NCBI GenBank assembly: GCA_002794465.1
Contig: MTSL01000106.1
Span: forward strand, 1-18,034
Source: Paramicrosporidium saccamoebae KSL3
Lineage: Eukaryota > Fungi > Cryptomycota
Direction of reading: 5' to 3'
DNA length: 18,034 bases
The notes beneath the pieces are model-generated. The model searched no databases. It worked only from the letters and a program-made list of their open reading frames with translations, and was not told the DNA's origin. Of the stretch, positions 57 to 16,702 are shown one piece after another. Made by a program: the position numbers and the translations under genes. Every line of letters starts with the position of its first letter. The first letter of the stretch is position 1.

Positions 57-2968
57 TTATTCTCTACTATTGGGGTTCGATGGAGGTGGGGGATATCGAC
101 CATACAAATCTTCCACCCGTCGATTCGGCGGGGGACCGCGATGGAAAGCTCCCATTGAAGGCTGCATGGGACGCGGTGGACCCGACAGCACATGGAACGG
201 ATTCCCCTGTGGTGCAGCAAAAGGATATTGCCCCTGTTGGTACGACTGATGGGGTTGATGAGGCTGGTGGGGCTGATAATGCTGAGAGTCATAAGGACGA
301 GAGTCTCCTTGATGATGGGAATCTCTTTGGGGAGGCTGTTGATATGGATTCCTTTGGTAAGAGTCTTGTTGATGCGAATCTCTCTGGTACGCCTCTTGCT
401 GATACGAATCTCTTTGGTACGAGTCTTGTTGATGCGAATCTCTTTGGTAAGAGTCTCGTTGGTACTCTTGCTGATACCCTCTCTGTCCTCCTTGTCGTCC
501 CTGTCCTCTCTGTTGGTATCCTTCCCATTGTCCACCATTTCCTCTCCGTTGACCATCGGATTGGTATTCTCGCTTGCGTCCTGAATCACGTCTTTCATAA
601 TCTCTTCCATGCTCTTGATGCATGGAATGATGTCCAGGTCGTTCCAATTGCAATCTTCCCGGCATCCGTCGTGAGGCCATTCCCGATTGCACCGCACTAA
701 TGTCTTCAGGAGTGAGGATGCGGGATGGCGGTTGTGCCTCTGGGAGCAGCGTGGCTTTGTGTCGCAAATGTTTTCGGTCGTGGTATGGCACAAAGTAGAC
801 AAAACACGCCACTTGAACATCCTCAACATCTACACAGCCCTGTTCAGGCAACGGAGTGGAATAGGTACTCCCCAATCCGGGGAAATCAGCATCCTTCATC
901 ACCCCTCCCGCCAGTCCATCAGTCTCAGCCGGATCCAGTGAAGCAGAATGTTTTCCCTCCTCCAATCTTTTAACCAAATGTCTTGTCACCGGATGCCAGA
1001 TACTGAAAAATACTCGATCCTCTCCTCGAATGTTCATCTGCTGATCCGTAGGGTCCAACTCTGGATAGACCTTTTCAAGTGCACCAAGCAAACGCTCCTC
1101 ATCAATGAAGGGTAGGAGTACGACACCCTGCCAAGCTTGTTTCTTTCCATTCAGATCAATGGCAAAGTCTGTGGGATAAAAGTCAATCACCTCCGAGTCG
1201 TCCTCTGTCATTAGTCGACGGAATGGCTCTGGGACGAGCATCCGACTGTCAGCTGGGAATACACCCATCAACTGGTCAAAGGGTCGGAACGGCTCTCCCA
1301 GTTCAAACGAAATATCCAACTCTCCAATCCCAGTAAGATCGCTGGCAAATGGCGCAAAGTGATAAGGATAAAACCACTTCCAGGAGGGACATCCTTGATA
1401 ATAATATGCCATCACCCAACAGAGACCCTCCACATATGACTTGACCACTTGGGCAATGAACTCTTGATTGTCGGGTTCAATATGGAATTTGCTCCGGTAG
1501 TAGCGACCCTTGCAGCCCCGCTCCCAGAGACGGACATCATCCACAGGCTCATCATCTTGCAGGCTGGCTTCCAGGTGCGTCTTGAACGCCTGGGCAGCCA
1601 CTCTGTTAGCATCGCGCATCTCCAAAAGAGCATTTCCATTCGCAAACTCTCCCGATGGCGGTGTGGGCGTTTGGCTGTGGACCATTTCCCGTTCCGCATC
1701 GGCCATTTTTCTCCGCTTAATGTTTGCATCACGTCGTTCCTCCTTCTCTCGACGTTTCTGGAAGATCATCTCCTCCACCTTTCCTACATCATCAAGGATA
1801 TATTGCGCCCGCGACAATTCAACTGTGCCGTTGTGGCAGATGAAGCCACCCATTCGAGGGAGATTAGCCTTGTAGCTGTCCAAAAGAATGTCAATGGCAC
1901 CCTCACGGATTTCTAGACAGGGAAGATGCGGCAAAAAGTCGTTTCCCACAAAGAAGCACATAAAGATCCAATCGTCAATGGCCCGCTCCAAATCCCATTT
2001 GAAGGGGAGCTGAGTGGACGGCTTCAGTTCCGCCTCCAAATACTCTCTCAAGATGGAAACATCCAAGAAAATAAACGGCTTTTCCTTTATCGGCGCCATA
2101 GTAAAGGTGGGATCATTCTTGGCCCTCTCCACACATGAATCGGCGGCATGCCCTTTAACGCCGCAATGGCCACATGGCGTGTATTTAACCTGCTCCTCCG
2201 AGAAGACATCTTCTCGCAATACTTTAAAGTATGGTTCATGCGTAGCCATCGACAACATGATCAAATCTGCATCTAATCCATAAATCACGTGTTTCGTATG
2301 CGGATCGTAGTCGGGATCAAGTCGCTGGCGTCGGATGTAGTCCATAATCTTGTGCTCTCCCTCTCCAGGTACATTGGCGTCTGAAAAAATCACCTTGACG
2401 TTTCGCCAGGCTGGTTCTCGGTTCATACGTTCCACTATATAGTACTTGATGCTCGATGCAATTAATGCCATAAATTTCGTCCCGGGTGTGATGCAGTTGT
2501 AGTCGAAATAATCTCCACTGTCCTCCGCTTCCGTGCCAAGTTCGCTACGGATTTCAGCATCTTTTTCCGTCTTGTCACGACGTTCTTTGGCGGCCCGGAA
2601 GCGACGGGAACGCTGCTGATTCATTTTGGCTCGTGGGGCAACCCCGTCAATGGCCATGAACAGCAGTTTCCGAGGACGGATCATAGCAAAGATGCGGTCA
2701 ATGTACTTGAATATCTCTACCATCATTTCCTCCTCCGTCTCTGGCGCAGCCTATACATGAAACGGCGTGCCTAGGTTACCTTGTCCGTGGGGTGACAACA
2801 CGGATGGATAATCCCATTCATATCCAAATAGAGATTGTCAAACTCGCAGCCATTCGGATTGGCAGCCAGCAAGTCCAGTGGCGCTCCTTCTGAGGATGCC
2901 TCTACCACATTTCCCACAGTTTTTGGATACTTTGAGGACAACCAGCGAAATAGTGCTGGAACTCCCAT
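57..2968 (-). CDS. XRN2: 5'-3' exoribonuclease 2 (Xrn2/Rat1); complement(join(57..2750,2780..2968)), about 960 aa
   Basis: Canonical start [90 protein letters not shown], and a CX2CX4HX4C knuckle ([14 protein letters not shown]). A 29-nt intron at 2751-2779 (GTAACC..TATAG) joins HPTDK to [10 protein letters not shown] in frame. Confidence 0.97.
346..465. repeat. Coding tandem repeat, 8 x 15 bp with 30-bp periodicity, encoding (Y/H)Q(R/Q)DS pentapeptides in the Xrn2 C-terminal tail
   Basis: Units include gagtcttgttgatgc (361-375 = 421-435) and gaatctctttggta(c/a) (406-420, 436-450), with degenerate units continuing to about 301 and 480. Confidence 0.9.
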
Positions 2969-2989
2969 ACTTTGACCAGGGGAGTCACA

Positions 2990-3892
2990 ATGGGTCCGGA
3001 TGTCTACTGGGACAGTCTAACGGTGGAACGAACACTGAATGTTGATTGGCACACCAAATACATTGCTCTACTTGTTAACATACAATCCGATGCTCATCCG
3101 GACGGGGCAAGGTCCGTGTTGCTGGCTACTCGCCAAGGATTCGACACTGCCCAGCACCTCTTGAATCTCTTCAGGTCGGCCTCTACCCAGCGTGAGCTCA
3201 CGCTACTAGACCATAACGACATTTACTATCGCTTTCTTGTGGGCACTGATGGTGCTGCAGATTGCAAGTTGACTCTCATTCATCCGGCTACTCCTGCTCA
3301 TATCGCAAAATACACCCGTCAGGACCGCATGATTGTCGCTGAAACGCCGGTTATGTACCGATCGATTGTGCTTCCCTGGATTGACGCCCATGGCTCGTCC
3401 CGTCTCAAATGGATAGAGAACATTCTCAATGGAACCAGCGAGCAGGATCGTCTACTGCACCGAAGCGACGATCCCACCAACGGGTTCGTTCTCCTTCCCG
3501 ACTGCAAATGGGACCAGACCTCCCTGACAAGTCTGTATCTTTTGGCCATCCTTTCTCGACGGGATGTGCGTTCGTTGAGAGATTTGACCGCTGAACACCT
3601 CCCAGTCCTCAAAGAAATACGACGAGTTGTTTATCAGGCCGCTCTGGATTCATACAAGCTCGATCCGCGCAAGTTGCGAATGTATGTACATTATCTTCCC
3701 ACCTATTATTATTTCCACGTCCATATCGTCCATGTTGATTTGGAAGCACCCGGCTGTGCTGTCGGTGCTGCCCACTTGCTCGACGACATTATCGATAACA
3801 TTGAACACATTTCCAACGACTATTATCAGCGCAGGACATTGCATTACTATATTGGAACAGAGCATGAACTTTGTCCATTATTAAAGCAATAA
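2990..3892 (+). CDS. DCPS: m7GpppX diphosphatase (scavenger decapping enzyme DcpS/Dcs1), about 300 aa
   Basis: [24 protein letters not shown], and the HIT-type motif [17 protein letters not shown]. The ORF-track start at 2972 is a TTG; the first ATG is at 2990. Confidence 0.93.
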
Positions 3893-4024
3893 ATGTGGTC
3901 ATGTTCATGGTGACCTTTAATAAGCATTCAACTAGAGACTCCAAGAGGTTCTCAAATTGTGATAGAGGGCATTTAGTCAGAGATTACAGGAAATGTATAC
4001 AGGGAGATGATATGGGGAGCGTCA

Positions 4025-4945
4025 TCATTTCGAAATGGACTGGATATGTAGAAATACTGAGGAAAAGTCTTTTTGTCCCATACGTTCTGCTAGGGTGCGA
4101 TACATTTCGGTGGCAATCGCACCGGTGGGGAGTGCGGCGCCGCATCGTTGAGCCTCCTCCAGAGCCAACATCATGTCCTTGACCATCAGCTTTGTTGCGA
4201 ATCCGCCCGCATACTCGGAGGAGGAGGGCACACCAGCCATGATTCCTGGTACTGGATTGTAAGTCTCGCTGGACCATGATCGACCGCTGCTCGAGTTGAT
4301 CACGGCAGAGAGCACCTTTGGATCCAGTCCCAATCGACCTCCAAGATGCAATGCCTCGGACAGAACAACCATTGAAACCCCGAGGATGAGATTGTTGCAA
4401 ATCTTGGCGACCTGACCGCTCCCAGATCCTCCACAATGGAAAATGTTCTTGCCCATGGCCTGGAATAAATCTTTGTTGGTCTCTAACACCTGCGGATCGC
4501 CACCCACAAGAAAACTAAGAGTTCCTGCCGCAGCACCCTTAACACCACCCGAGACGGGTGCATCCAGGAAATTCACTTGGTGTCGGATGGCCGTTTTGGA
4601 AATCTTTTCCTCAACCCCAGGAGAGACAGTGCTGCAATCTATCAGGGTATTATTTTGTTTTGCATGGGCAACCAGGCCGTCACTGCCCAGATAGACATTG
4701 TTCACGATGGAATTATTCGGAAGCATTGTGATTATCCGGGGACAAGTGCTAGCCAACTCCGACAGGGATTTTGCATGTTTTGCAAATTCACGCATCTTGG
4801 CGGAGTCTGTGTCATGAACAACGACGTCGTAGCCCGCCTTGGCGAGATTCCGGGCCATCGGACTGCCCATATGGCCCAGCCCGACGAACCCAACTGTCTT
4901 GCTAGTGGCACTGTAATGCCGCCTCAATGTTGTCCACATACGCAT
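4025..4945 (-). CDS. HIBADH: 3-hydroxyisobutyrate dehydrogenase, mitochondrial, 306 aa
   Basis: Rossmann motif VGFVGLGHMGSPMA, DAPVSGG, catalytic GSGQVAKICNN, SSGRSWSSETYNPVPG, GGFATKLMVKD. The N-terminus is Arg-rich and presequence-like (MRMWTTLRRHYS). Confidence 0.93.
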   Translation of the reverse strand: MRMWTTLRRHYSATSKTVGFVGLGHMGSPMARNLAKAGYDVVVHDTDSAKMREFAKHAKSLSELASTCPRIITMLPNNSIVNNVYLGSDGLVAHAKQNNTLIDCSTVSPGVEEKISKTAIRHQVNFLDAPVSGGVKGAAAGTLSFLVGGDPQVLETNKDLFQAMGKNIFHCGGSGSGQVAKICNNLILGVSMVVLSEALHLGGRLGLDPKVLSAVINSSSGRSWSSETYNPVPGIMAGVPSSSEYAGGFATKLMVKDMMLALEEAQRCGAALPTGAIATEMYRTLAERMGQKDFSSVFLHIQSISK

Positions 4946-5038
4946 GACTGTTTACGTTGTACTACAAATAAATTTATCTTTATCCCGAAAAGGACGTGGG
5001 CAGAATAAATTAGTCGTTTCGCACCATTAGACTCAGAA

Positions 5039-6482
5039 ATGGTACCACAGACCTTTTCGCCCTGCACAATGGCGCCGCGCCAGCCGTACGACAAAATGGC
5101 GTGCGGTATCCTGTCCGCACCGCTCACCTCTAGTGATGGTAGGGCTGCCGGCGCGTGGCAAGACGTACATTGCGCAAAAAGCAAGTCGATATTTGAACTG
5201 GCTGGGCATCTTGACGCGTGTCTTCAATGTAGGGGATTATCGACGCAAGTTTTGCGGAGCTGAGCAGCGCCATGCCTTTTTCGACGCCAAGAATTGCGAG
5301 GCGGAGGAACGAAGGGCAGCGGCAGCCGAGGCGGCATTGGCGGATATGATGGAATGGCTACGGACCACGGAGGGACAGGTGGCCATTTACGACGCTACCA
5401 ACACAACCACGCAGCGACGGGAAATGATCCAAAAAGCATGTGAAAAGGAGGGAGTGTCGGTATGCGCCGGGGATGACTAAGTTGTAGGTCTTGTTCATAG
5501 AGTCCATCTGCCACGACCAAGAGTTGATTCTGGCCAACATCCGGGAGGTAAAGCTCAGCAGTCCCGACTATGCCAATGTTGACTCTGACACGGCCGTGGC
5601 GGACTTTACCGAGCGCATCCAACACTATGCCGAGATCTACCAAACGCTTGACGAAGACGGCCCCGAGGAGCGCTCTTCCTTTGTCAAACTGATCGATGTG
5701 GGTGCCAAGGTGATTATCAATCGCATCCACGACTATCGCCAGAGTCGGATCATTTTCTTCCTAATGAATCTGCACATTAAGCCCCGGTCCATATTCATAT
5801 CAAGAGTAAGCAGAGATTATTATTGACAATGTTGTAGCACGGCGAGACAACCCACAATGTAAAGGGACGGATTGGAGGTGATGCGAGTCTCAGTGACCGA
5901 GGTCTGCAGTTTGCTACGGCACTGCCGGCAGTGGTGCGTCAGATCCACGGCGCTGCGCCCCTGACAGTGTGGACAAGCACTTTGCGTCGTACCATGCAAA
6001 CTGCCAAACATATGGACTGTCCAAAGTTGCAATGGAAGGCGTTGGATGAGCTGGATGCAGGGGTTTGTGATGGTCTCACCTATGAAGAGATTGAGACACA
6101 GTACCCCGAGGACTTTTGTTTGCGCGATTCGGACAAATTCCATTTCCGCTACCGGGGCGGTGAATCATATGCAGATTTGGTGCTGCGCCTGGAGCCGATC
6201 ATCATGGAGGTGGAACGACAGGAGAACATTATGATCATTGGTCATCAAGCAGTGCTACGCGCCATCCTTGCATACTTCCTGAACAAGCCGCATGACGAGC
6301 TGCCTTATCTGAAGATTCCCCTGCACATGCTCATCCAATTGACGCCGCGAGCCTACGGATGTCAAGTGACTTACTATCGCGTGGGTATTGACGCGGTGGA
6401 TACGTATCGCGGACGACCAGGGACAATAGTGCCTTGTTCTCCTGAATCCATCAATATTCCCAGCCCGCTACCTGTCGAATAA
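5039..6482 (+). CDS. PFKFB: Bifunctional 6-phosphofructo-2-kinase/fructose-2,6-bisphosphatase; join(5039..5105,5134..5459,5488..5805,5838..6482), about 451 aa
   Basis: P-loop VMVGLPARGKT, FNVGDYRR, AIYDATNTT, FIESIC, SRHGET and LDELDAG..GLTYEE, YRGGESY. Introns at 5106-5133 (28 nt), 5460-5487 (28 nt) and 5806-5837 (32 nt) restore these motifs. The start could instead be the ATG at 5069. Confidence 0.93.
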
Positions 6483-6622
6483 CCAACAGCCATCCGCAAG
6501 AGAATATATAAAGGATTCAAAATAAGGGATCCCAACTAAAGGATCAGAGAGGAAGTAAAAATAAAGGCTCTCTCAGTGAAATTGTAATGTATTATAGCAT
6601 ATCTATGACTCAGGACGGAGGA

Positions 6623-6637
6623 TCTCTCAGTGAGAGA
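6623..6637. repeat. 7-1-7 palindrome TCTCTCA-G-TGAGAGA; its left 11 bp also occur at 6569-6579
   Basis: Read directly from the sequence; function unknown. Confidence 0.7.
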
Positions 6638-6762
6638 GTATGTTAGCACATGGTACTAAACAGTATCCGCTTACTATTGGTAGTACTGATAGCTATCCGA
6701 TAACCCAACCAGGTCATCGCGGGTGTCGCATAGTGGGGGATAAATAGTATGGACTGTCAGGT

Positions 6763-6997
6763 GGGAAAGGGGGGGTTTGTTCACTGCTAATCTTAGAATA
6801 GTATGGATATACATCTCACTGTCCTTGGATACCCAGCAAAGCGATCCATTCTAGCACACAAATACCCAACTAATCAATCCTCTGGCTCTACGTCACATAG
6901 TCAACTAATCAATCCTCTGGCTCTACGTCATGGTGAGGATGGCGGCCTATAAAGACGCCACAAACTTTTCAATAGAGGTAATATGCTCATCAACACA
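6763..6997 (+). mobile_element. Candidate retrotransposon remnant: polypurine tract plus a single LTR-like segment
   Basis: Purine tract GGGAAAGGGGGGG (6763-6775), then TT and TGTT at 6778. The segment contains a 29-bp duplication, TATAAA (6948-6953) and AATAGA (6971-6976), and ends ..TCAACA(CA) at 6995/6997 followed by TGG. No second LTR, target-site duplication or pol remnant is seen. Confidence 0.35.
6867..6930. repeat. Perfect 29-bp direct repeat (caactaatcaatcctctggctctacgtca) x2 with a 6-bp spacer
   Basis: Copies at 6867-6895 and 6902-6930; spacer catagt. Confidence 0.95.
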
Positions 6998-7080
6998 TGG
7001 CCTGTTCACTGCAAATATCATAAATGTATGACGGATCAAACTCCCCCGTCTTTACTAAAAACCTCACAACTTACATCTAT

Positions 7081-8707
7081 TTACACTAGACCCACGAGAT
7101 GGCCTGGGATTGTGTTGATTTGCCACACCCGGAGGGGCAACATTTCCAGTCGTCGGATTGCCGGAATCAGATAGAAGCGAGTCAGCAACATGCCCGTCAT
7201 TACACAGACCGTGTTGACAATGTAATAGCCGTCCAGGATCACAGTGCACGTGTCTGCAACGCATTTATGCACTGTAAACCAATCAACCGCCGCCATGAGA
7301 AACAGCTTTGGCCACACCCCACCCAGATTGGTAAGGGTGTTGAGGAGCGTCATGTATGTCCCACCGACGGCGGGATCGCTGATCATGGAGAAAAAGGAGC
7401 TCATTGAGACGAACATGACTGTCGAGGCAAAGGACGACACAACCGTTAACAGTGTCACTACCAAAAAGTATCCATTTCCTACACCGACAGTAGGGAATCC
7501 CGCCAGGACGAACATGGCCAGGACGGCAATGGTCAATTTAAAGTATAGTGCATGCTGCCAGGCCCACAGAGGACGGCCATTCTGCGACCATCGCGCTGCC
7601 ACAAATCCCACCACAATTTGACACGGGAAATCAATGAGCACCGTCATGGCCAACTTTTCGCGTGGGAAGCCGCGTTCAATCAGCTTCAATGGCGCAATTG
7701 CATCCAGCGCCAGAAAACCAATGCGCCACAATAGCAGCACCGATCCCAGACGACGCACATTGGGCAGTGATACGATCCGGAGAACTGTGCCATATGCCCC
7801 TGCAATGTTTTTGGGCACAAATTGCTGTATCATCAGCGGCTCTCGTTTCATAAGCGCCACGGCAAGTGTTCCCAAAATTGACGCCCATCCCCAGAACCGC
7901 AGAAACGAGGAAATCTCAAATACGCCCACCCCCAATGGTTCGCTTCGCAGGTAATTATCGCTATAATTAATAAGCACGGGGATGTACCAGAATTCGGCCG
8001 AGTTGAGGGCCAGGAACACGGTAAACGAGACGAAATAGCCGCTGTTGAGACCGACGGTCTGACAGGTGGAGGAAAAGTGTACATGTTCCGGATCCAACAG
8101 GGTCAATGCCCATCCTACAGATCAGTCGTTGCATCAGACGTACCATCTACTGCAATGTCCTGCGTTGCACACAGGAGGATAAACAGTGTAAACACCAAAG
8201 TCATTGTGCCAATGTCGAGATCAGCATTATCCAGCCATCCCTCCACCCGTCCGCTGATTAATAGGAACCCAAGGCCAATCAGTAGTTGAGTGGGGATGAT
8301 CCACGACTTTCTCCTACCAATCTTCCGCCAAAAGTACGAGTCCACTATGGGCGACCATAGCAGTTTTAGACTGTATGGATAGCCGGCCAGCGAGAACAAT
8401 CCAAGGTCCGTAAAGGTCAGACTCTGGCCACCGCGACTCTTCAATAGGTATGGCAAGGTCCCATGTACCAGACCCAATGGAATTCCTTGCAAAAAATCTA
8501 GCCATCACCAACGGCACGGCTGAAGGTACATAGGAAAATTAGAAGCGCGTAGTTGGTCCCTTGTGTCAACGCAGTACGACGTTCTCCGTGGAGTATGCCC
8601 GAGGCAGTGGCTGCCCGTCCACGGCCTTTCAGGAGATCGCCCAGTAACAGCGACTCAGCCGACGACTCTTCGCCCAACGAGTATCGAGAGCGCGACTTGG
8701 GATTCAT
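7081..8707 (-). CDS. SLC33A1: Acetyl-CoA transporter (AT-1/SLC33A1 family, MFS); complement(join(7081..7960,7988..8114,8144..8497,8530..8707)), about 512 aa
   Basis: LLIFLYFLQGIPLGL, YPYSLKLLWSPIVDS, GRRKSWIIPTQ, ATQDIAVDGWALT, STCQTVGLNSGYF, DPAVGGTYMTLLNTLTNLGG. Introns at 8498-8529 (32 nt), 8115-8143 (29 nt) and 7961-7987 (27 nt, gives AEFCDNYL). Confidence 0.92.
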
Positions 8708-8773
8708 AGGGCCCGGTCCATCAACATGTCCTAATTGGGCCACAATTTACACCGTCGCTTGCTATTTCCAGCA

Positions 8774-9189
8774 ATGCCCATTGAAGACCGAATACGTTCT
8801 CCACACATTCCCATTCCCCGAGAGGTGCTAACCCAGCTGGACACCGGTACCAGAGCTGAGCTGTCTGTGCCCATGTGACTGTAGACGTGTCCATCTTTGA
8901 CAAAACTGCGTTTATTTCGCAAATATTGCAGAATTGCTCATGGAATCAGCTAGAGGACATTGACTCTACCATTTCTGACGACATTGTCAGGCTGCGCACC
9001 GCCAAAAAGACTCTCATGTCAGAAAACTATGCCAAATTCATCACCGTCCATGAACATCTCCAAAAGGTAGCACGTCCCCCTCTATGCATTCTTACCCTTT
9101 AGCTGAAGGAAAATTTGACAGCTGCAGTGGCGACGATGGAGCAGATGCAGGAAATTGTTGAGGGCGAACTGCAGGAGTCTGACCAATGA
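8774..9189 (+). CDS. VPS51: Small Vps51/Vps67-domain protein (CATCHR tethering-complex N-terminal domain); join(8774..8846,8885..9066,9103..9189), about 113 aa
   Basis: LDTDVSIFDKTAFISQILQN..L..I..L....KTLMSENYAKFI resembles the Vps51/Exo84/Cog1 N-terminal motif (FD...Y...L...KTLVYENYNKFI). Introns at 8847-8884 (38 nt) and 9067-9102 (36 nt) fit the frame. Which subunit it is remains uncertain. Confidence 0.65.
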
Positions 9190-9238
9190 AAAATCAGCTT
9201 GGAATCCCATAATTTCGAACTATTAAATTCTACGGGGG

Positions 9239-9246
9239 TATATAAA
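9239..9246 (+). promoter_or_regulatory. TATA box of the U6 gene (Pol III)
   Basis: TATATAAA starts 30 bp upstream of the predicted U6 +1 at 9269. Confidence 0.7.
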
Positions 9247-9268
9247 GGACGCCCGCCCCAGTGCTCCT

Positions 9269-9291
9269 GTGGTGTCTCCGGACCCACGCCA

Positions 9292-9325
<34 letters not shown>

Positions 9326-9390
9326 TGCCCCTGCGCAAGGATGACAATCTAAACTTGAGATGGATCAGGTGTTTACACCTGGCAATTTTT
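9269..9390 (+). ncRNA. U6: U6 spliceosomal snRNA (variant)
   Basis: Core ACTAAAATTGGAACGATACAGAGAAGATTAGCATTGCCCCTGCGCAAGGATGACA, with ACAGAGA at 9309-9315 and the AGC triad at 9321-9323. A 5' stem-loop GTGG(T)GTC-TCCG-GACCCAC spans 9269-9287. Upstream TATA and downstream T8. Confidence 0.95.
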
Positions 9391-9393
9391 TTT
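9386..9393 (+). terminator. Pol III oligo(T) terminator of U6
   Basis: A run of 8 T directly follows the U6 3' region. Confidence 0.85.
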
Positions 9394-9413
9394 GCATTCC
9401 AACCGCTAGTTGT

Positions 9414-10145
9414 TTATAAAGTTGTTTGTGCTGCAGGTCTATTGTATGTATCCAGATAGCGTAGAAAGGACGCGGGTATCACCGACGTCGACATGACCGT
9501 CTGCAGTGCCTCTACTGCATTCGCATCCAACTTGACCTTGGCCACTTGTAGACGTCCCAAAAAGGCGGCCAGCTTTGCAAACCGTCGGTCTGTCTTCCTG
9601 GCTACCACCTCTGTCAGTGTCTTCCTCTCCCCGATTCCTGACTGCAGGAGCACCTCAAATATTTCCTGCCAGACGCTGACATGGAGACTTAGCCTGCGTT
9701 GCTGGGCTTGCTGGAGTATTTCAATGAGGCGGGAGAGATGGAGACCTCGAAGATAGACGAACAGGATGGCCGACTCGAGATGCGGTTGGGTGTTGGTGAG
9801 ACAGAGGAACCGGTCCATGAGGGCGGGGGAGGCGGAGTAGCAGATTCGCTCAAAGGTGCGCTGCACTGCATGTGGAGGGACCGTCGCTTTCTTGGCCGAC
9901 ATGAGCTCCAATATCCGCAGTGCACCAGCCGGGTCCGTCTCGTTGGTGGCATAGGCAGCCAATTCCGAGACGTCCTCCTTGGCATCCGCCGCAATTCCAA
10001 GCAGTTCGGTGGCAACTTCCATGTCCTTAGCTTTGCATGCCGCCACCACTGCATCCTGCAGCTGGAGACTGGCAAAGACGGGCATGGTGCGTACCTTTTC
10101 CAACAGGTCCTGTCGGAATGTCGTGGAGTAGAGTCGGCGGAGCAT
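9414..10145 (-). CDS. Hypothetical protein, 243 aa, probably mitochondrial and alpha-helical (PPR-like?)
   Basis: Long ORF filling the gap between U6 and COX17. MLRRLYSTT is a typical presequence, and the body is amphipathic and Leu/Ala-rich. No family recognised. Confidence 0.7.
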   Translation of the reverse strand: MLRRLYSTTFRQDLLEKVRTMPVFASLQLQDAVVAACKAKDMEVATELLGIAADAKEDVSELAAYATNETDPAGALRILELMSAKKATVPPHAVQRTFERICYSASPALMDRFLCLTNTQPHLESAILFVYLRGLHLSRLIEILQQAQQRRLSLHVSVWQEIFEVLLQSGIGERKTLTEVVARKTDRRFAKLAAFLGRLQVAKVKLDANAVEALQTVMSTSVIPASFLRYLDTYNRPAAQTTL

Positions 10146-10176
10146 GGATCCCGGTCACATCCCCAACAAACGTTTA

Positions 10177-10407
10177 TTAGACTATAAAGCCATAGGAGGT
10201 CAGACATGCACGATGCGCTTCTATGTATGTCTGACAATTCTCTTCGCCATTGAATAAGACACAGTCGTCGCGCAGTTTGCGCGTTTCGGGACATGCACAG
10301 CACGGCTTCAATGGGTTTCCTTGTTCGTCGACCGCCGGCTTGGTCGAAATTTCATTTGATACACCGGCAATAGGAGCTTCGGCTTCGACCATCAGATTGC
10401 AAGTCAT
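10177..10407 (-). CDS. COX17: Cytochrome c oxidase copper chaperone Cox17, 76 aa
   Basis: KPCCACPETRKLRDDC..NGEENC..IEAHRACL..YGF: the copper-binding CC plus twin CX9C. Confidence 0.96.
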   Translation of the reverse strand: MTCNLMVEAEAPIAGVSNEISTKPAVDEQGNPLKPCCACPETRKLRDDCVLFNGEENCQTYIEAHRACLTSYGFIV

Positions 10408-10450
10408 GAATGTATTTTTGGGTTACGATAAAATGGGTTTATCATTAAAA

Positions 10451-13400
10451 CTACAATTCGGGACAATTGAACGGCTCTGGCGCCTCCGGCTCATTATCTT
10501 CGGGGGTGGCAGAGATCACTTTGATATCCGATCGCTCAAAGAATTCAGCCGTCTGAGACCCATTACAATCACGGAGGACAATGATTTCGCCCTTCCAGCG
10601 TCCCGAGATTGGTTGATATTTGCCCTCGGCAGGGAAAAGGATGAATGGGAGTTGTTGAGGGGTGACACGAGAAAGATTGCTGATGGAAAAGTTCTCAGGC
10701 TCGGGCTCTGGTGTTGGCTCAGGATCATTGTTATCCGCAGACAGCTCGGGGGATGGTTCGGGTGACTTTGGAGAGTCAATGTCCATCAAACTGCCCTCAG
10801 TAGCCTGAGTAGGCGCCACATCCTAAATGGTCAGACAGCGTTTCTAGTAATGTACAATTTCCATGCCGTTGGATTTTCCAGACTTTTTGGCCCGGGCAGC
10901 CGCCTTGGCTGTTGTGGAGAGGACCGCAGTGACAAACTAAAGATTAGGGATTATGGTGGATCACTGGTACCTTTTTGGGAGCGGCCACAGCGGTTGCTTT
11001 CACTGGGGGAGGGATCGAAAACATGCTCGGCTTGACATTGCAGGTGACCTCAAACTTGGGAATATTAAGCGACTCGTCAACAGCAATCAGCGCAGTAGGG
11101 GAGAGGGCAAAGGAGAGGAAATGCGTCAAGGGATACCAATACCAGAACTGGCAGAAAAGCACTGTTCCTGCCACTGCCATGTGATTCACATGTCCGCTAG
11201 GAGAGGTCAGAGAGAGCACCGAGTTTCGTCCACCGGCATCGATAATGCCCTGAGCAAGGACGGCACCGAATTTGGCCATGGCATCTTCGCTCTTTGTCCC
11301 CACGACCGTCTCAAAGGTAGTACGGGCCCATGTGGAATCTGCGCAAGTAGTGGCGTTCTGCTGCATCATGAGCATGGCCATCGAAATGTACGCTCCCTGA
11401 CGCACAAAATCGGTAAAATCTTTGCACATTGGTTTCACCAATTCAATGGCAGCAGTGTTTCCCGTTCCAGCAAACGCAATACCCAACGCCATTGCCGCTC
11501 CGTATCTCACATGAGGATTGTAGCTTTCCGTCAAGAGTTCAATGATTTTGGACAGTTCTTGGGGGTTTTGGCAAAGAACGATTCCAAGGGAAGTGACAGC
11601 CGCACGACGCACATCATCGCTTCCGTCACTAACTGCCGCATGCAACAACCTTCCCAGTGCCTTCTTTTCGCTAGTACCCGCATATGCAGTGGCCAGAGTC
11701 CATATTCCTCCATATCGGATCAATGGATCCTTGGCTAGCAACATTTGTTCAATAAAAGTGTCTGATTGCTCTCTCAATCCCGCAAATATCAGAGAAATTG
11801 CAATGGAGATTCCACGAATTGACTTTTCGTGGCGAGTTTCGTGGGCGTAGGAGAGAATCTCGTGAGCAATCTCGGCATTTCCACTTTCATGGAGAATCAG
11901 GCCAATGGCAATGGCTGCAGCTTCACCAGAAACAGCATTGTCATTATACAGGATTCCCTTGACCACATCAACAAGTTCCATGTCGCCCGAAGACATGGTC
12001 GAAGCGCCTAATCCGAGACACAGTCCATGATGAAGAACTTCATTCTCCGTCTTTCCAATCTGTTCCATAAAGTACTCCTTCTCGACAGTTCCACAGCGAG
12101 CATTGATAAGTCCCAGCGCGTACATGGCGCCTCCTTCAGAATATGGACTTCCAGATCCATCATTCGAGGGCAGGTAGGGTTTTAGGATTTCCCGTCCCTT
12201 GCTAGCCTGTCCCTTGTGAATGACACCAAGACTGGATGCGGCCGTAAACTTGGCCCAGTTTGATGCAAATCCGAGCCATTCCAAATTCTTCCGAAGGAAT
12301 TCATCGTTGGTGCTGCCACAGTGAAGGATGGCATTTGAACAGGAGAGGACAGAATGGTGCATAGAGTTGTGGGCATTCAGCATTTCCTTGGTACGCTCCA
12401 TCACCATCATATCCGCATTGTTATTCCGATACAAAAATTCTAGCTGAAGCTGGGTAGAACGTGTCCCGTCCAATATGGAGACGACTTCAGTGACAAGACC
12501 AGAAGCTTCGGAGCTCGGGGCTTGCTTGCCTTGTCCCATTATGGAGATGAGGATAGTTTGTAGGAATTCTCGAGTAGCATCAGCACATAGATTGAAGCAT
12601 ATTTGCAGAACAACTGGACGCACAGCAGCATCTTTACACGAATCTCCAATCAAGCGAGCAATCAAACGTGAACATCCATCCGCATCGTGCATGGCAACCA
12701 GACAATCAGCGACAAAAATAAAGTCTGGCTTAGCAAAGCCTGCAGCCATATTGGCCACGACTGCAAGGACTCTTTGCTGATACTCCAGACTAGAAGCATG
12801 TTTCATTACGGCCTTCTGGGCATACTCGAGATGCTCTTGGGGAGACGGACTGCTCTTTAAAGCAGTCTCAAGAGTATCGAGACGATGGGCCTCGATGGCA
12901 ATGCCAATGGCCTGCTTGTACTCTTGTGCGGATAGACATCCCTCAATCAGACGCTCCACCAGTGCCTCCAGTGCAGGCTCCACAATCCTCACATCGTCCG
13001 AATGTTCCTCATTGTGCACTCGCACCTCCACATATTGATCAATAGCTTTGGCAAGAATCGTCTCCACAAAGGGCGAAAGCTCACAGACTTTGAACATGGT
13101 GTCGGCTTTTAGGGCATAGTCCACCGACTTTTCATAGTCGCCCAGGTGAAAGTGCAACTTGGAGAGGAGTAGCCACGCGGGGGCGGGCTGTGGAAGTTGG
13201 CCTGCGAGAGCCAAAATTCGCGTCAAGGAATCGGATATTTCGTACCAGAAAAAGTCCACGAGCTCCAGAAGCATATTGACCGCTTGAGAGCACACCTCAA
13301 GCTGAGGCTCCTCCAGCAATGCCATTACCCCAACTACAGACGAGATTAGAATTCCCACGGTTGCTATACCGGCCGAGGTGGCTTTGCGGCACTCGGAGCC

Positions 13401-13466
13401 TGCAAACGCGCCCTTCATATCGCTTCCTTTGGCGGCCATTGATGACTTGATAGTCGTCGCAGTCAT
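10451..13466 (-). CDS. RPN2: 26S proteasome regulatory subunit Rpn2/PSMD1; complement(join(10451..10822,10856..10936,10971..13333,13370..13466)), about 970 aa
   Basis: TSAVGVMALLEE, FWYEISDS, NWAKFTAASSLGVIHKG, SPYSEGGAMYALGLI, DDVRRAAV, YNPHVRYGAA, QGIIDAGGRN, TAVLSTTAKA..RAKK, C-terminal EPEAPEPF. Introns at 13334-13369 (36 nt), 10937-10970 (34 nt) and 10823-10855 (33 nt). The start could be the ATG at 13466, 13439 or 13418. Confidence 0.95.
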
Positions 13467-13545
13467 GTCTCGGCTCTCGGACAGCCAGGGATTTGGCTAT
13501 TTAACACTGGAAATAATAAGCGCATATATTTTTAATTTTCGATTA

Positions 13546-14175
13546 ATGCTGAAGATGAACGAGAACGCGGGTCCGCTCAGGATAGGCGTCTTGGGGATGC
13601 AAGGTGCTGTTATAGAACATGAAGGGGCTTTGAAGAGGGCCGATGAGAGCATCGAAATAGTGCTAGTAAGGTCGCCAGATGACGTTAAAAATCTTGATGG
13701 CCTGATCCTCCCTGGCGGAGAGTCTACTACCATTTCAATCAACGTGGCTCGTGGGGCGTTGCTCCCCATTCTCCAGGAGTGGATCCACGCTGGACGTCCT
13801 ACGTTTGGCACCTGTGCAGGGCTGATCTTAATGTCCAAGCCGAACATGGGCGGCTTTGACTGCACGGTGGAGCGCAATTACTATGGATCCCAGAGTGATT
13901 CGTTTGTCACAACTGTTCTGCACAATCTAAAGGAACTTGGTCCAAGCTCCAAGGGGGTATTTATCCGGGCGCCCGCTATCCAGGAGGTTTCAGATCAAGT
14001 AACCCCGCTTGCCGTGATAGATCATATTGCCGGACAACAAATTGTCGCCATACAGCAAGGCAACTTTTTGGGGACCACTTTCCACCCCGAACTAACAACT
14101 GACCCTACCTGGCATCGGTATTTCCTAAAAATAGCCAAAGCTTATAAGAAACAAGCTTTGGAAGCTTATCAATAA
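13546..14175 (+). CDS. PDX2: Pyridoxal 5'-phosphate synthase glutaminase subunit Pdx2/Sno1, about 209 aa
   Basis: IGVLGMQGAVIEH, LILPGGESTT, GTCAGLIL (catalytic Cys), FIRAP, FHPELT (His/Glu). The ORF-track extension from 13378 starts at GTG and overlaps RPN2; the ATG at 13546 or 13555 is the likely start. Confidence 0.94.
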   Translation: MLKMNENAGPLRIGVLGMQGAVIEHEGALKRADESIEIVLVRSPDDVKNLDGLILPGGESTTISINVARGALLPILQEWIHAGRPTFGTCAGLILMSKPNMGGFDCTVERNYYGSQSDSFVTTVLHNLKELGPSSKGVFIRAPAIQEVSDQVTPLAVIDHIAGQQIVAIQQGNFLGTTFHPELTTDPTWHRYFLKIAKAYKKQALEAYQ

Positions 14176-14605
14176 ATGGTCACCACCATGCAGGTAGCCT
14201 GCGACAGCCCCACTAACCGGCGCATAGATGATATGGAACTGGAGCTACGACAACACTATTGTCTTTAGTTGGTGGCACACAAGCTCCGCTATTGGTCTTT
14301 TCGCCGCATGTCTCCTGGTTGTCATCATCTCTCTTTCCCACGAATACATTGCATTCTTCCAGGCGCAGCATGATAGAGAAGCTCTCACACACGAAGCCAC
14401 CTATGCGAGTCTTGCGCAGCACGGAGCAATTAACTACCAGGTGCCGGGACGACTGCAGCGCTCCGTATTCTACGGGATGAGAACGTTTGTCACAGTCTTT
14501 CTGATGCTCATCACGATGACATTTAATGGATTCCTCATCATGTCAATAATCATGGGAGCTGTTGTCGGCCACTATCTTTTGGGAAGAGGGGCCGCACATC
14601 ACTAA
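14176..14605 (+). CDS. CTR: Ctr-family copper transporter (Ctr2-like); join(14176..14193,14228..14605), about 131 aa
   Basis: N-terminal MQMIWNW (MxM), three hydrophobic segments, MLITM (MxxxM), TFNG and GAVVG (GxxxG). A 34-nt intron at 14194-14227 has a perfect CACTAAC branch site. Confidence 0.9.
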
Positions 14606-14664
14606 GATAGTCATGGCGGTAGGCAAAGCAATAAATATGAAGCCAGATTGTATATATTAGGGTG

Positions 14665-15081
14665 TTACCAGCTGGACCTTTGGACACCAAGCAATTGTCC
14701 CTTCAATGCCATATCACGGAAGCGCATTCGGTTTACATTAAACTCGTCCAGTACGGCACGTCCACGACCCGTGAGAATGCAGCGTCGGACCATACGAACC
14801 AGCGACGTGGCAGCCGGCATCTCGGCCAACTTGAATTGCGCGAGCATGCGGGTTTTGGTGGGGAGGGCATCGTTGTGTGTTATATAGCGCAATGCCATAC
14901 GAGGAATTTCAGAGTCTGCAGCGATACGCCGCCTCACCCGATCAAACAGCATCTTTCCCTTCATCCTCAACCTGCCAGGGATTCGAGGATGCTTATGATA
15001 AAAGTCCTTGGACTGTGGATAGCTGTGGTGGATATAATAGCAATCGTTGGTGAGCAAGAGCGTGTCTATTAAAGGTATCAT
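14665..15081 (-). CDS. MRP2: Mitochondrial ribosomal protein uS14m (Mrp2); start uncertain (15081, or 14964 giving 99 aa)
   Basis: LPTKTRMLAQFKL, RRCILTGRGR, FNVNRMRFRDMALKGQLLGVQRSSW match the S14 family C-terminus. Confidence 0.9.
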   Translation of the reverse strand: MIPLIDTLLLTNDCYYIHHSYPQSKDFYHKHPRIPGRLRMKGKMLFDRVRRRIAADSEIPRMALRYITHNDALPTKTRMLAQFKLAEMPAATSLVRMVRRCILTGRGRAVLDEFNVNRMRFRDMALKGQLLGVQRSSW

Positions 15082-15212
15082 TATAGACTAACACCCTCGG
15101 CACACTGAATTGTGGGATCGCCATCAGGGTTATGTTTACCACCAAGCATCAGCAGATGTACTGTCCAGCAGTCTTTCATTTCACAGACTCAGACATCAGC
15201 TCGCCAAAAAGT

Positions 15213-15284
15213 TTCCGCATCGGGGAATCGAACCCCGGCCGCCGCGGTGAAAGCGCGGAATCCTAGCCACTAGACCAATGCGGA
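15213..15284 (-). tRNA. tRNA-Glu, anticodon TTC
   Basis: TCCGCATTGGTCTAGTGGCTAGGATTCCGCGCTTTCACCGCGGCGGCCGGGGTTCGATTCCCCGATGCGGAA: 7-bp acceptor stem, CCGCG/CGCGG anticodon stem, GTTCGATTCC T-loop, and a T5 terminator at 15206-15210. Confidence 0.96.
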
Positions 15285-15455
15285 TATAATCAGAAGGTGG
15301 TCTATATTTCAAGGATACTAAGTTTGGCTAACCATCTGGAATGAAATATCGCCTTGACGTATGCAAAAGTTGGCTCGCCACAAGAACAGAGCTGGGCTTC
15401 CAATCAGCAAGCTTTTATTTCCGACCTTTAAACAACAGCAAACTAAATAACTCTT

Positions 15456-16702
15456 TTATCTGCCAAGATTAACGTCGGCGGATTGCGAATCAAAGTTTTG
15501 TCCCAGCCACTCTGTAACTATATCAGCGGGATCCGCAACACCGTCTACGAACCCTTTTAGCCATCCATGGCCCTATAATCATCAAGTTATTGTGAGATGT
15601 TACAAACAAAATATCAAACGACGCTCGATCATTTGGATCCTTCTTAAGACTATAGCTGAGACCACTCGCACAAGTTAGGCTTACCAAATTGACAAGAAAT
15701 CCTGGCAAACCTCTGAAAATTTTCCTTCGGGCAAATTTGGTGGAGGATCATGCAAGATTGCCATGAGCTGTGCAAACGGTCCATCAAATTTCTTGCTACA
15801 GAACAAAGAGTCACCGGTGGCTGCTTCGTAGAGCGTGACCCCCAGACTCCAAATGTCGGCTTTGGTAGTGTACGCTTTTGGAACGTCAATCGCCACCCGT
15901 TCTGGCTAAGAAATCAGCGCAAACCTGGGTAGTGTACAGCCATGTAGCACATGCTCCCTATCTGTGTTTTGGCTAGCGACCTTACCAGATACCCACTCAC
16001 TCCAAAATCACAAAGCTTTACTTTGCCTTTCCGGTTGACAAGGATGTTAGAGGGCTTGATATCTACAAATCTATGGAAACCCACAACAGCCCTACCCCGA
16101 TGCATAACATTCATCTCCTTGTACAAAAAATACATGCCCTGTAGGACCGAAAAAGCAACTGCACAAAGCACATCTTCGGGGAGCGGGCCTTTAGATAGTT
16201 TTAGACTCTCGATTGAACCAGCTTCCATGAATTCGAGACAGAAGAAAATCGAGGAGCGGTTATGAAAGGCGCCATAAAACTCTATTATTGACTGTGACTC
16301 TGCTCGTGAAAGAACATTTAATTCCATCATCACCTGTTTGACCGAATCGGGCGACACTTCGAGTCGTAAATCCTTAAGGGCCATAATCTTCCCCGACGGC
16401 TTGTGTTGGACCAGCAACACGAGTCCATACTGGCCCCTCCCAATTTCCCGGATAAACTCAAACTCGTCCATATTTATGCGATACGTCATCCCGCTGGACA
16501 AACATTGAGCCCCATATTCGTCCATAAGAATCGTCTTGTTGTTAAAGTCTAATTTACCGTGCCCATCGCTAGAGAGATTAAATAAAGGTCGCCGATACGA
16601 CATGAGATAACCCGGACTCTGAAGGGCAGCGGCCCAAGCAAGACTGCCTTTGCAACTACCTTCGGAGCTTCCAAGTTGAAAATAAGAATACTTATCGGCC
16701 AT
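15456..16702 (-). CDS. PBS2: MAP kinase kinase, Pbs2/Wis1-like; complement(join(15456..15572,15604..15649,15685..15905,15938..16062,16096..16702)), about 371 aa
   Basis: IGRGQYGLV, MALK, EFYGAF, HRDIKPSNIL (after splicing), DFGVSGYLVRSLAKTQIG (SxxxT), YMAPER, ADIWSLG, CLKKDP, GHGWL. Introns at 16063-16095 (33 nt), 15906-15937 (32 nt), 15650-15684 (35 nt) and 15573-15603 (31 nt). Confidence 0.9.

Follow-up and report, generated by a model that had tools for sequence, protein, structure and literature searches.

Paramicrosporidium saccamoebae is an intranuclear parasite of Saccamoeba and belongs to the Rozellomycota, which have the Microsporidia as their sister group (PMC5701793). The window analysed here is one whole scaffold of its genome, MTSL01000106.1 (assembly GCA_002794465.1; 18,034 bp), with 15 protein genes, a U6 small nuclear RNA (snRNA) gene and a tRNA-Glu(UUC) gene, and a coding share of 84%. 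Our subject is a set of 17 very short introns, about one per gene, that are spread over seven of the 15 protein genes. They were first proposed from the letters of the scaffold alone (the sequence-only reading), which also attributed the DNA, rightly, to a relative of the fungi. One intron lies in XRN2/Rat1, three each in PFK2/FBPase2 (6-phosphofructo-2-kinase/fructose-2,6-bisphosphatase), an acetyl-CoA transporter gene and RPN2, two in the gene for a Vps51-N-domain protein, one in a Ctr copper-transporter gene and four in a MAP2K-like kinase gene. No intron-bearing gene encodes a ribosomal protein, and by codon number the introns range from 6 to 847. Genes without introns are DcpS, HIBADH (3-hydroxyisobutyrate dehydrogenase), COX17, PdxT, mitochondrial S14, the start of NAT10 and a gene for an unknown protein of 243 amino acids (aa).

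Removal of the 17 intervals yields seven uninterrupted frames with full-length Pfam matches. Junctions sit within invariant motifs (HR|DIKPSN, YMA|PER, SR|HGET and AVD|GWAL), and ungapped alignments of the spliced proteins are obtained with human MEK1, SLC33A1 and PSMD1 and with S. pombe Rat1. Uncultured relatives from metagenome and Logan assemblies (L001 to L005) add independent support. Nine junctions have an intron-less orthologue in a relative, and in all nine the proposed interval is the best-scoring GT/GC–AG removal and gives an ungapped alignment. L004 has introns at 11 of the 17 positions, always of different sequence and usually of different length; the other six are cleanly absent. 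No intron is called for in the eight remaining protein genes, which run colinear with their orthologues; the 17 thus constitute the complete coding-region set of the scaffold rather than a sample picked by pattern. The weakest-supported of them is Vps51 intron 1. Exon 2 of Ctr starts with ATG, which leaves the Ctr intron unsupported by the window alone; it is rescued by the L004 orthologue. Together, homology and intron-less orthologues fix the boundaries and confirm, as far as sequence comparison can, that all 17 are real spliceosomal introns (lengths in nucleotides, nt; ORF, open reading frame):

2751–2779, minus strand: XRN2/Rat1 intron, 29 nt, phase 0, after residue 63 (HPTDK|AAPETE), GTAACC...TATAG; spliced protein ungapped against S. 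pombe Rat1; 39-nt intron at this site in L004.
5106–5133, plus strand: PFK2/FBPase2 intron 1, 28 nt, phase 1; top-scoring removal against intron-less L001; the intron at this site has 45 nt (CAG) in L002 and 29 nt in L004.
5460–5487, plus strand: PFK2/FBPase2 intron 2, 28 nt, phase 0, with an in-frame stop; top-scoring removal, absent in L001; 64 nt (CAG) in L002 and 36 nt (AAG) in L004.
5806–5837, plus strand: PFK2/FBPase2 intron 3, 32 nt, phase 0, splitting SR|HGET; site empty in L001 and L002; 43-nt intron in L004.
7961–7987, minus strand: acetyl-CoA transporter intron 3, 27 nt, a multiple of three without in-frame stop; absent in L004, top-scoring removal; spliced protein ungapped against SLC33A1.
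8115–8143, minus strand: acetyl-CoA transporter intron 2, 29 nt (AVD|GWAL); ungapped against SLC33A1; absent in L004.
8498–8529, minus strand: acetyl-CoA transporter intron 1, 32 nt; ungapped against SLC33A1; 37-nt intron at the same site in L004.
8847–8884, plus strand: Vps51-N-domain protein intron 1, 38 nt, with in-frame stops; required to join the ATG exon; 39-nt intron with a CAG acceptor in L004.
9067–9102, plus strand: Vps51-N-domain protein intron 2, 36 nt, with an in-frame stop; within the Pfam VPS51_Exo84_N match; 33-nt intron in L004.
10823–10855, minus strand: RPN2 intron 3, 33 nt, with in-frame stops; top-scoring removal; absent in L004 (...DMEIDVAPS... continuous); the orthologous L005 intron has 39 nt and has CTRACCATTTAG in common with it.
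10937–10970, minus strand: RPN2 intron 2, 34 nt; absent in L004; spliced protein ungapped against PSMD1; the orthologous L005 intron has 36 nt, with GTAC...CTAATCTTTAG common to both.
13334–13369, minus strand: RPN2 intron 1, 36 nt, a multiple of three without in-frame stop; TSA|VGVMALL ungapped against PSMD1; 36-nt intron with an AAG acceptor in L004.
14194–14227, plus strand: Ctr copper-transporter intron, 34 nt, after codon 6; top-scoring removal; the intron-less L004 ORF reads MIHSTMKMVWNW against MVTTMQMIWNW in the spliced product.
15573–15603, minus strand: MAP2K-like kinase intron 4, 31 nt; ungapped against MEK1; 36-nt intron at the same site in L004.
15650–15684, minus strand: MAP2K-like kinase intron 3, 35 nt; ungapped against MEK1; 36-nt intron (CAG) at the same site in L004.
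15906–15937, minus strand: MAP2K-like kinase intron 2, 32 nt (YMA|PER); ungapped against MEK1; 42-nt intron at the same site in L004.
16063–16095, minus strand: MAP2K-like kinase intron 1, 33 nt, a multiple of three without in-frame stop, splitting HR|D; absent in L004, top-scoring removal; ungapped against MEK1.

All 17 intervals start with GTA and end with TAG on the coding strand, with A at +3 throughout, and a recount of every one upheld the range of 27–38 nt (mean 32.2, median 32) and the lack of any CAG acceptor. The base at +5 is C in eight, G in five, A in four and T in none, exactly the tally on which the earlier claim of a mostly lost +5G was built. These counts correspond to 95% confidence intervals (CIs) of 80% or more for TAG and for +3A, and of 10–56% for +5G. 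The introns are not AT-rich (47% G+C, against 50% for the scaffold). Five lengths are divisible by three (p = 1.0 against one third), and three of these introns lack an in-frame stop.

The relatives place these traits in a wider frame. L003 and L004 share about 70% amino-acid identity with P. saccamoebae and are syntenic across the whole scaffold, U6 included; L005 is the closest relative (about 90%), and L001 and L002 reach about 73–80% in PFK2. When metagenomes were scanned with XRN2, the matches were all relatives, none of them above 58% identity, and none was a further P. saccamoebae sequence. The 17 introns of relatives measure 29–64 nt, begin with GTA in 16 cases and carry +5G in five (10/34 when pooled with the scaffold), so short length, GTA and weak +5G are traits of the clade; introns of this style occur in four of its uncultured members. 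Their acceptors are mixed (TAG 10, CAG 5, AAG 2). Both introns from L005 read GTAC...TAG, and TAG use differs between this species plus L005 (19/19) and the other relatives (8/15; Fisher p = 0.001), as it does between the scaffold and L004 (Fisher p = 0.009). Exclusive TAG, which holds for the 17 introns of the scaffold, is thus confined to this species and, through two orthologous introns, to L005; as a property of the clade it fails. Intron turnover in the clade is high: beyond the six positions empty in L004, that relative has two extra kinase introns, and in PFK2 L001 is intron-less and L002 lacks intron 3.

What marks the introns

The sequence-only reading held that length plus GTA and TAG makes up the splicing code. 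However, nine GTA-N-TAG pairs of 27–38 nt also turn up in mature coding sequence, read on the sense strand, against 10.7 ± 3.2 expected from synonymous-codon shuffles. Such exonic decoys therefore occur at chance frequency, length and GTA/TAG are insufficient, and further signals are required. The same counts show no depletion and give no sign of selection against cryptic exonic pairs. GTA and TAG individually fall short of expectation, yet by no more than TAA, TTA and ATA do, which indicates a general avoidance of TA and not a splicing signal.

Additional signals were found at both ends. G occupies position −1 in 12 of the 17 introns (p = 7e-5; decoys 2/8) and T occupies position −5 in 14 (p = 9e-6; decoys 3/8), and leave-one-out scores from a position-weight matrix differed between real introns and decoys (Mann–Whitney p = 0.0045). 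A yTnAy-like branch 5-mer is present in 16 of 17 introns, compared with 7.6 in shuffles, none of which reached 16 in 1,000 trials. In 13 of 17 introns the A of such a motif is placed 7–10 nt from the 3′ end, compared with 4.1 in shuffles (0/1,000 reached 13), and 10 of the 17 introns of relatives show this placement too. The orthologous introns of L005 keep GTAC and CTRAY-N-TTTAG around a diverged middle. The description of the branch sites as loose accordingly stands for their sequence and not for their position: the putative branch site is loose in sequence yet tightly placed.

Several other accounts of the set were tried and set aside. Similarity among the 17 introns was not above that in shuffled controls, which speaks against an introner-like origin. 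Compensation of a missing +5G by −1G found no support either, since the two showed no association (4/5 versus 8/12). As for minor, U12-type introns, the /RTATCCTT donor was not found together with the TCCTTAAC branch motif, and the scaffold has no minor snRNA. Only the intron at 5106–5133 (GTATCCTG) resembles a U12-type donor, and the matching branch motif is absent. Its counterpart in L004, PFK2 intron 1 at 12482–12510, starts with GTATCCTC, likewise U12-donor-like and without a U12-type branch; the resemblance probably reflects mere conservation between orthologous introns.

Pairing with U6 and U1, and the competing explanations

The scaffold itself carries one of the RNAs expected to read these donors:

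9269–9395, plus strand: U6 snRNA gene (Rfam RF00026, 85.5 bits), ACAGAGA and AGC intact.

It is preceded by a TATA-like box at about 9240–9249 and ends in a T-run terminator. The syntenic U6 of L003 and L004 (90 bits) has an identical core with the canonical ACAGAGA and AGC. An altered U6, as first suggested, is thus not supported here or in the relative. U1, U2, U4 and U5 were not found in a search of the 18,034-bp scaffold. Two further features of U6 were observed. Its 3′ extension forms a 6-bp hairpin with two compensatory pair changes between the species (CAGGTG/CACCTG versus CAGTGG/CCACTG; the L004 U6 lies at 8670–8797), and one G-to-U difference from the consensus (CAUUGCCCC) is common to both.

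We consider the introns probably to be ordinary U2-type spliceosomal introns, shrunk to about 32 nt, of a kind typical of the Rozellomycota–Microsporidia lineage. The donor signal is G|GTA, with −1G and +1 to +3 informative and +4 to +6 degenerate; it is joined by a loose yTnAy motif whose putative branch A lies 7–10 nt before the 3′ end, and by a T-N-TAG acceptor. Across introns so short both ends are probably recognised together, and geometry may stand in for pairing that positions +4 to +6 no longer provide, in which case the snRNAs need not have changed. Several points weigh against this explanation. The sample is only 17 introns from one scaffold, and the position-weight matrix parts real introns from decoys incompletely. 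Donor complementarity to the canonical U1 5′ end averages 5.0 of nine positions, and of the three bases from +4 to +6 only 0–2 agree with the consensus for U6 pairing; with pairing this weak, some adaptation of U1 or its proteins is possible. In addition, short introns of Encephalitozoon cuniculi are spliced to less than 20% on average (PMC6349667).

The sequence-only reading went further and proposed rewired recognition, with introns defined by length and GTA/TAG only and U1, U6 or both changed to suit the lost +5G. We regard this as improbable. Its appeal lies in the donors, where +5G is retained in only five of 17, the remaining +5 bases are C (8) and A (4), and +4 to +6 seldom match the U1/U6 consensus; it also fits with microsporidian spliceosomes being strongly reduced and having atypical protein-binding loops in U1 (PMC3629993, PMC5499648). 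The same mixture at +5 tells against it, because no single U1 change could restore pairing to C, G and A alike, and ACAGAGA in U6 is unchanged here and in a relative. Canonical U1 5′ ends (ACUUACC) occur in Encephalitozoon (PMC5499648) and Stentor (PMC9505925), both of which have tiny introns. A code of length and GTA/TAG is further contradicted by the nine right-length pairs in mature coding sequence and by the additional signals at −1, −5 and the branch; the 120-bp intron reported in the P. saccamoebae S23 gene (PMC6349667) shows that length is not an absolute rule.

Less probable again is that the scaffold is unrepresentative and that CAG and +5G are used genome-wide as in ordinary fungi. 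The small number of introns and the CAG or AAG acceptors in seven of the 17 introns of clade relatives leave some room for this. Yet the CIs given above allow no less than 80% TAG and no more than 56% +5G, the set takes in every coding-region intron of the scaffold and was not chosen by pattern, the two L005 introns are also GTAC...TAG, the TAG difference from L004 is significant by Fisher test, and +5G is low in all relatives. Hardly any weight attaches to the idea that the interruptions are assembly errors, pseudogene lesions or recoding sites: all 17 have GT–AG ends, conserved motifs are restored exactly, 11 positions hold introns of other sequence and length in L004 while six are cleanly absent, and 15 intact genes lie within 18 kb.

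Within our preferred explanation of shrunken U2-type introns, a broader statement is tentative and somewhat less likely to hold than to fail: that P. saccamoebae and its uncultured relatives have about one tiny intron per gene throughout, read by a minimal code of G|GTA, a branch A about 8 nt from the end and T-N-TAG, with almost no U1/U6 pairing past +3.

Kinship with other tiny introns

The nearest known case is found in the sister lineage. Introns of the microsporidian E. cuniculi are GT–AG, short (22–76 nt, mostly about 25) and have a branch signal near the 3′ end (PMC3629993, PMC6349667); to this likeness can be added the canonical U6 of the scaffold and the canonical U1 of Encephalitozoon (PMC5499648). 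The two differ in number and signal strength. In E. cuniculi the introns number only about 37, their 5′ splice-site and branch motifs are strict and extended (PMC3629993), and many sit in ribosomal-protein genes, right at the 5′ end, whereas the 17 of the scaffold occupy seven of 15 genes, are spread along them and have a donor whose bases are degenerate from +4 onwards. Rozella, too, is reported to have putative introns, of about 30 nt (PMC6349667).

The proposed convergence with ciliates is a fair analogy for size, but the closest parallel is that of the sister-group Microsporidia. The tiny introns of Paramecium end in GTA...TAG. They measure 20–34 nt, overlapping the 27–38 nt seen here, and number about two per gene (PMC11334263). 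Paramecium is an unrelated lineage, and its introns show a clear deficit of lengths that are multiples of three; the scaffold has no such deficit, its five of 17, three of them translatable, being at chance level in a small sample. Stentor (15–16 nt) and Mikrocytos (16–17 nt) resemble it in combining a fixed distance of the branch A from the intron ends with a weak branch sequence (PMC9505925, PMC10245619), and Stentor keeps canonical U1 and U2 (PMC9505925, PMC10245619). Their introns are half as long and near-invariant in length, whereas those of the scaffold vary between 27 and 38 nt, with the constraint falling on the distance from branch to 3′ end. Nothing relevant emerged when the literature was searched for tiny introns of fungi, aphelids or Zoopagomycota, and the genome paper never mentions introns or splicing (PMC5701793); the tiny introns of P. 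saccamoebae are without earlier description in the literature searched.

Neighbouring features and the public gene models

Other features of the scaffold are the following:

15213–15284, minus strand: tRNA-Glu(UUC), between the S14 gene and the kinase gene.
57–560, minus strand: C-terminus of XRN2, a low-complexity repeat tail rich in Q, R, D, S and Y (YQRDSYQ...), beyond the conserved domains.
14173–14178, plus strand: TAAATG, where the PdxT stop directly adjoins the Ctr start on the same strand.
6483–7080: 598-nt spacer that separates PFK2 from the acetyl-CoA transporter gene, the two being convergent.

In L004 (3147–3150) PdxT and Ctr overlap as ATGA. The conserved, spacer-free arrangement of two unrelated genes could mean a dicistronic transcript or a promoter within PdxT. 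The 598-nt spacer is unusually long compared with about 115 nt in L004 and contains a tandem 35-nt direct repeat (6859–6893 and 6894–6928, 91% identical) and two more short repeats.

The genome was annotated with MAKER and with Augustus trained on Rhizopus, and RNA sequencing exists for the species (PMC5701793). The public annotation omits two of the 15 protein genes, Ctr (14176–14605) and the Vps51-like gene (8774–9189), and its product lengths conflict with the homology-backed models in six more: the five other intron-bearing genes and the intron-less HIBADH. Lengths in the public and the homology-backed models are:

XRN2 (PSACC_01475): public 918 aa, homology-backed 960 aa; the public model joins GNV to AAPETE; in a search with the XRN2 protein it matched at 100% identity.
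Acetyl-CoA transporter: public 409 aa, homology-backed 512 aa.
Kinase: public 317 aa, homology-backed 371 aa.
RPN2: public 955 aa, homology-backed 970 aa.
PFK2: public 459 aa, homology-backed 451 aa; the public start lies inside HIBADH.
HIBADH: public 233 aa, homology-backed 306 aa; its start is taken by the over-extended PFK2 model, and the truncation accounts for an exact-protein search with the HIBADH ORF that gave no match.
Ctr: public not called, homology-backed 131 aa.
Vps51-like protein: public not called, homology-backed 113 aa.
Mitochondrial S14: public 136 aa, homology-backed 99 aa; the public model gains an N-terminal extension through a 74-nt GTA...TAG intron.

The public XRN2 model takes out 155 nt and with them the catalytic-site motif. 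For S14, the gene span and product length of the public model allow its intron to be reconstructed:

15066–15139, minus strand: candidate S14 intron, outside the 17, 74 nt, GTAAAC...AATAG.

The N-terminal extension that it would create is not conserved in L004, where the ORF starts at the MKGKM equivalent, so this intron remains an unverified candidate; if real, it exceeds the range of 27–38 nt.

To judge from this scaffold, tiny introns are largely mishandled in the public gene models, and the practical consequence concerns the annotation of the P. saccamoebae genome. Given such faults, analyses of gene presence, absence and loss that draw on the public proteome may be biased. If introns of this type are beyond gene finders that learned from other fungi, systematic truncation and gaps would be expected throughout the published proteome, and gene-loss inferences at the base of Microsporidia would then need re-checking.

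Paramicrosporidium serves as the reference genome for the transition from a fungus-like ancestor to Microsporidia. Here miniaturisation goes with a degenerate 5′ splice site, whereas the 5′ splice sites of intron-poor microsporidia are strict. Should a density of about one 30-nt intron per gene prove true of the whole genome, miniaturisation would have preceded intron loss in this lineage, and microsporidian intron loss would have been preceded by a stage rich in already shrunken introns.

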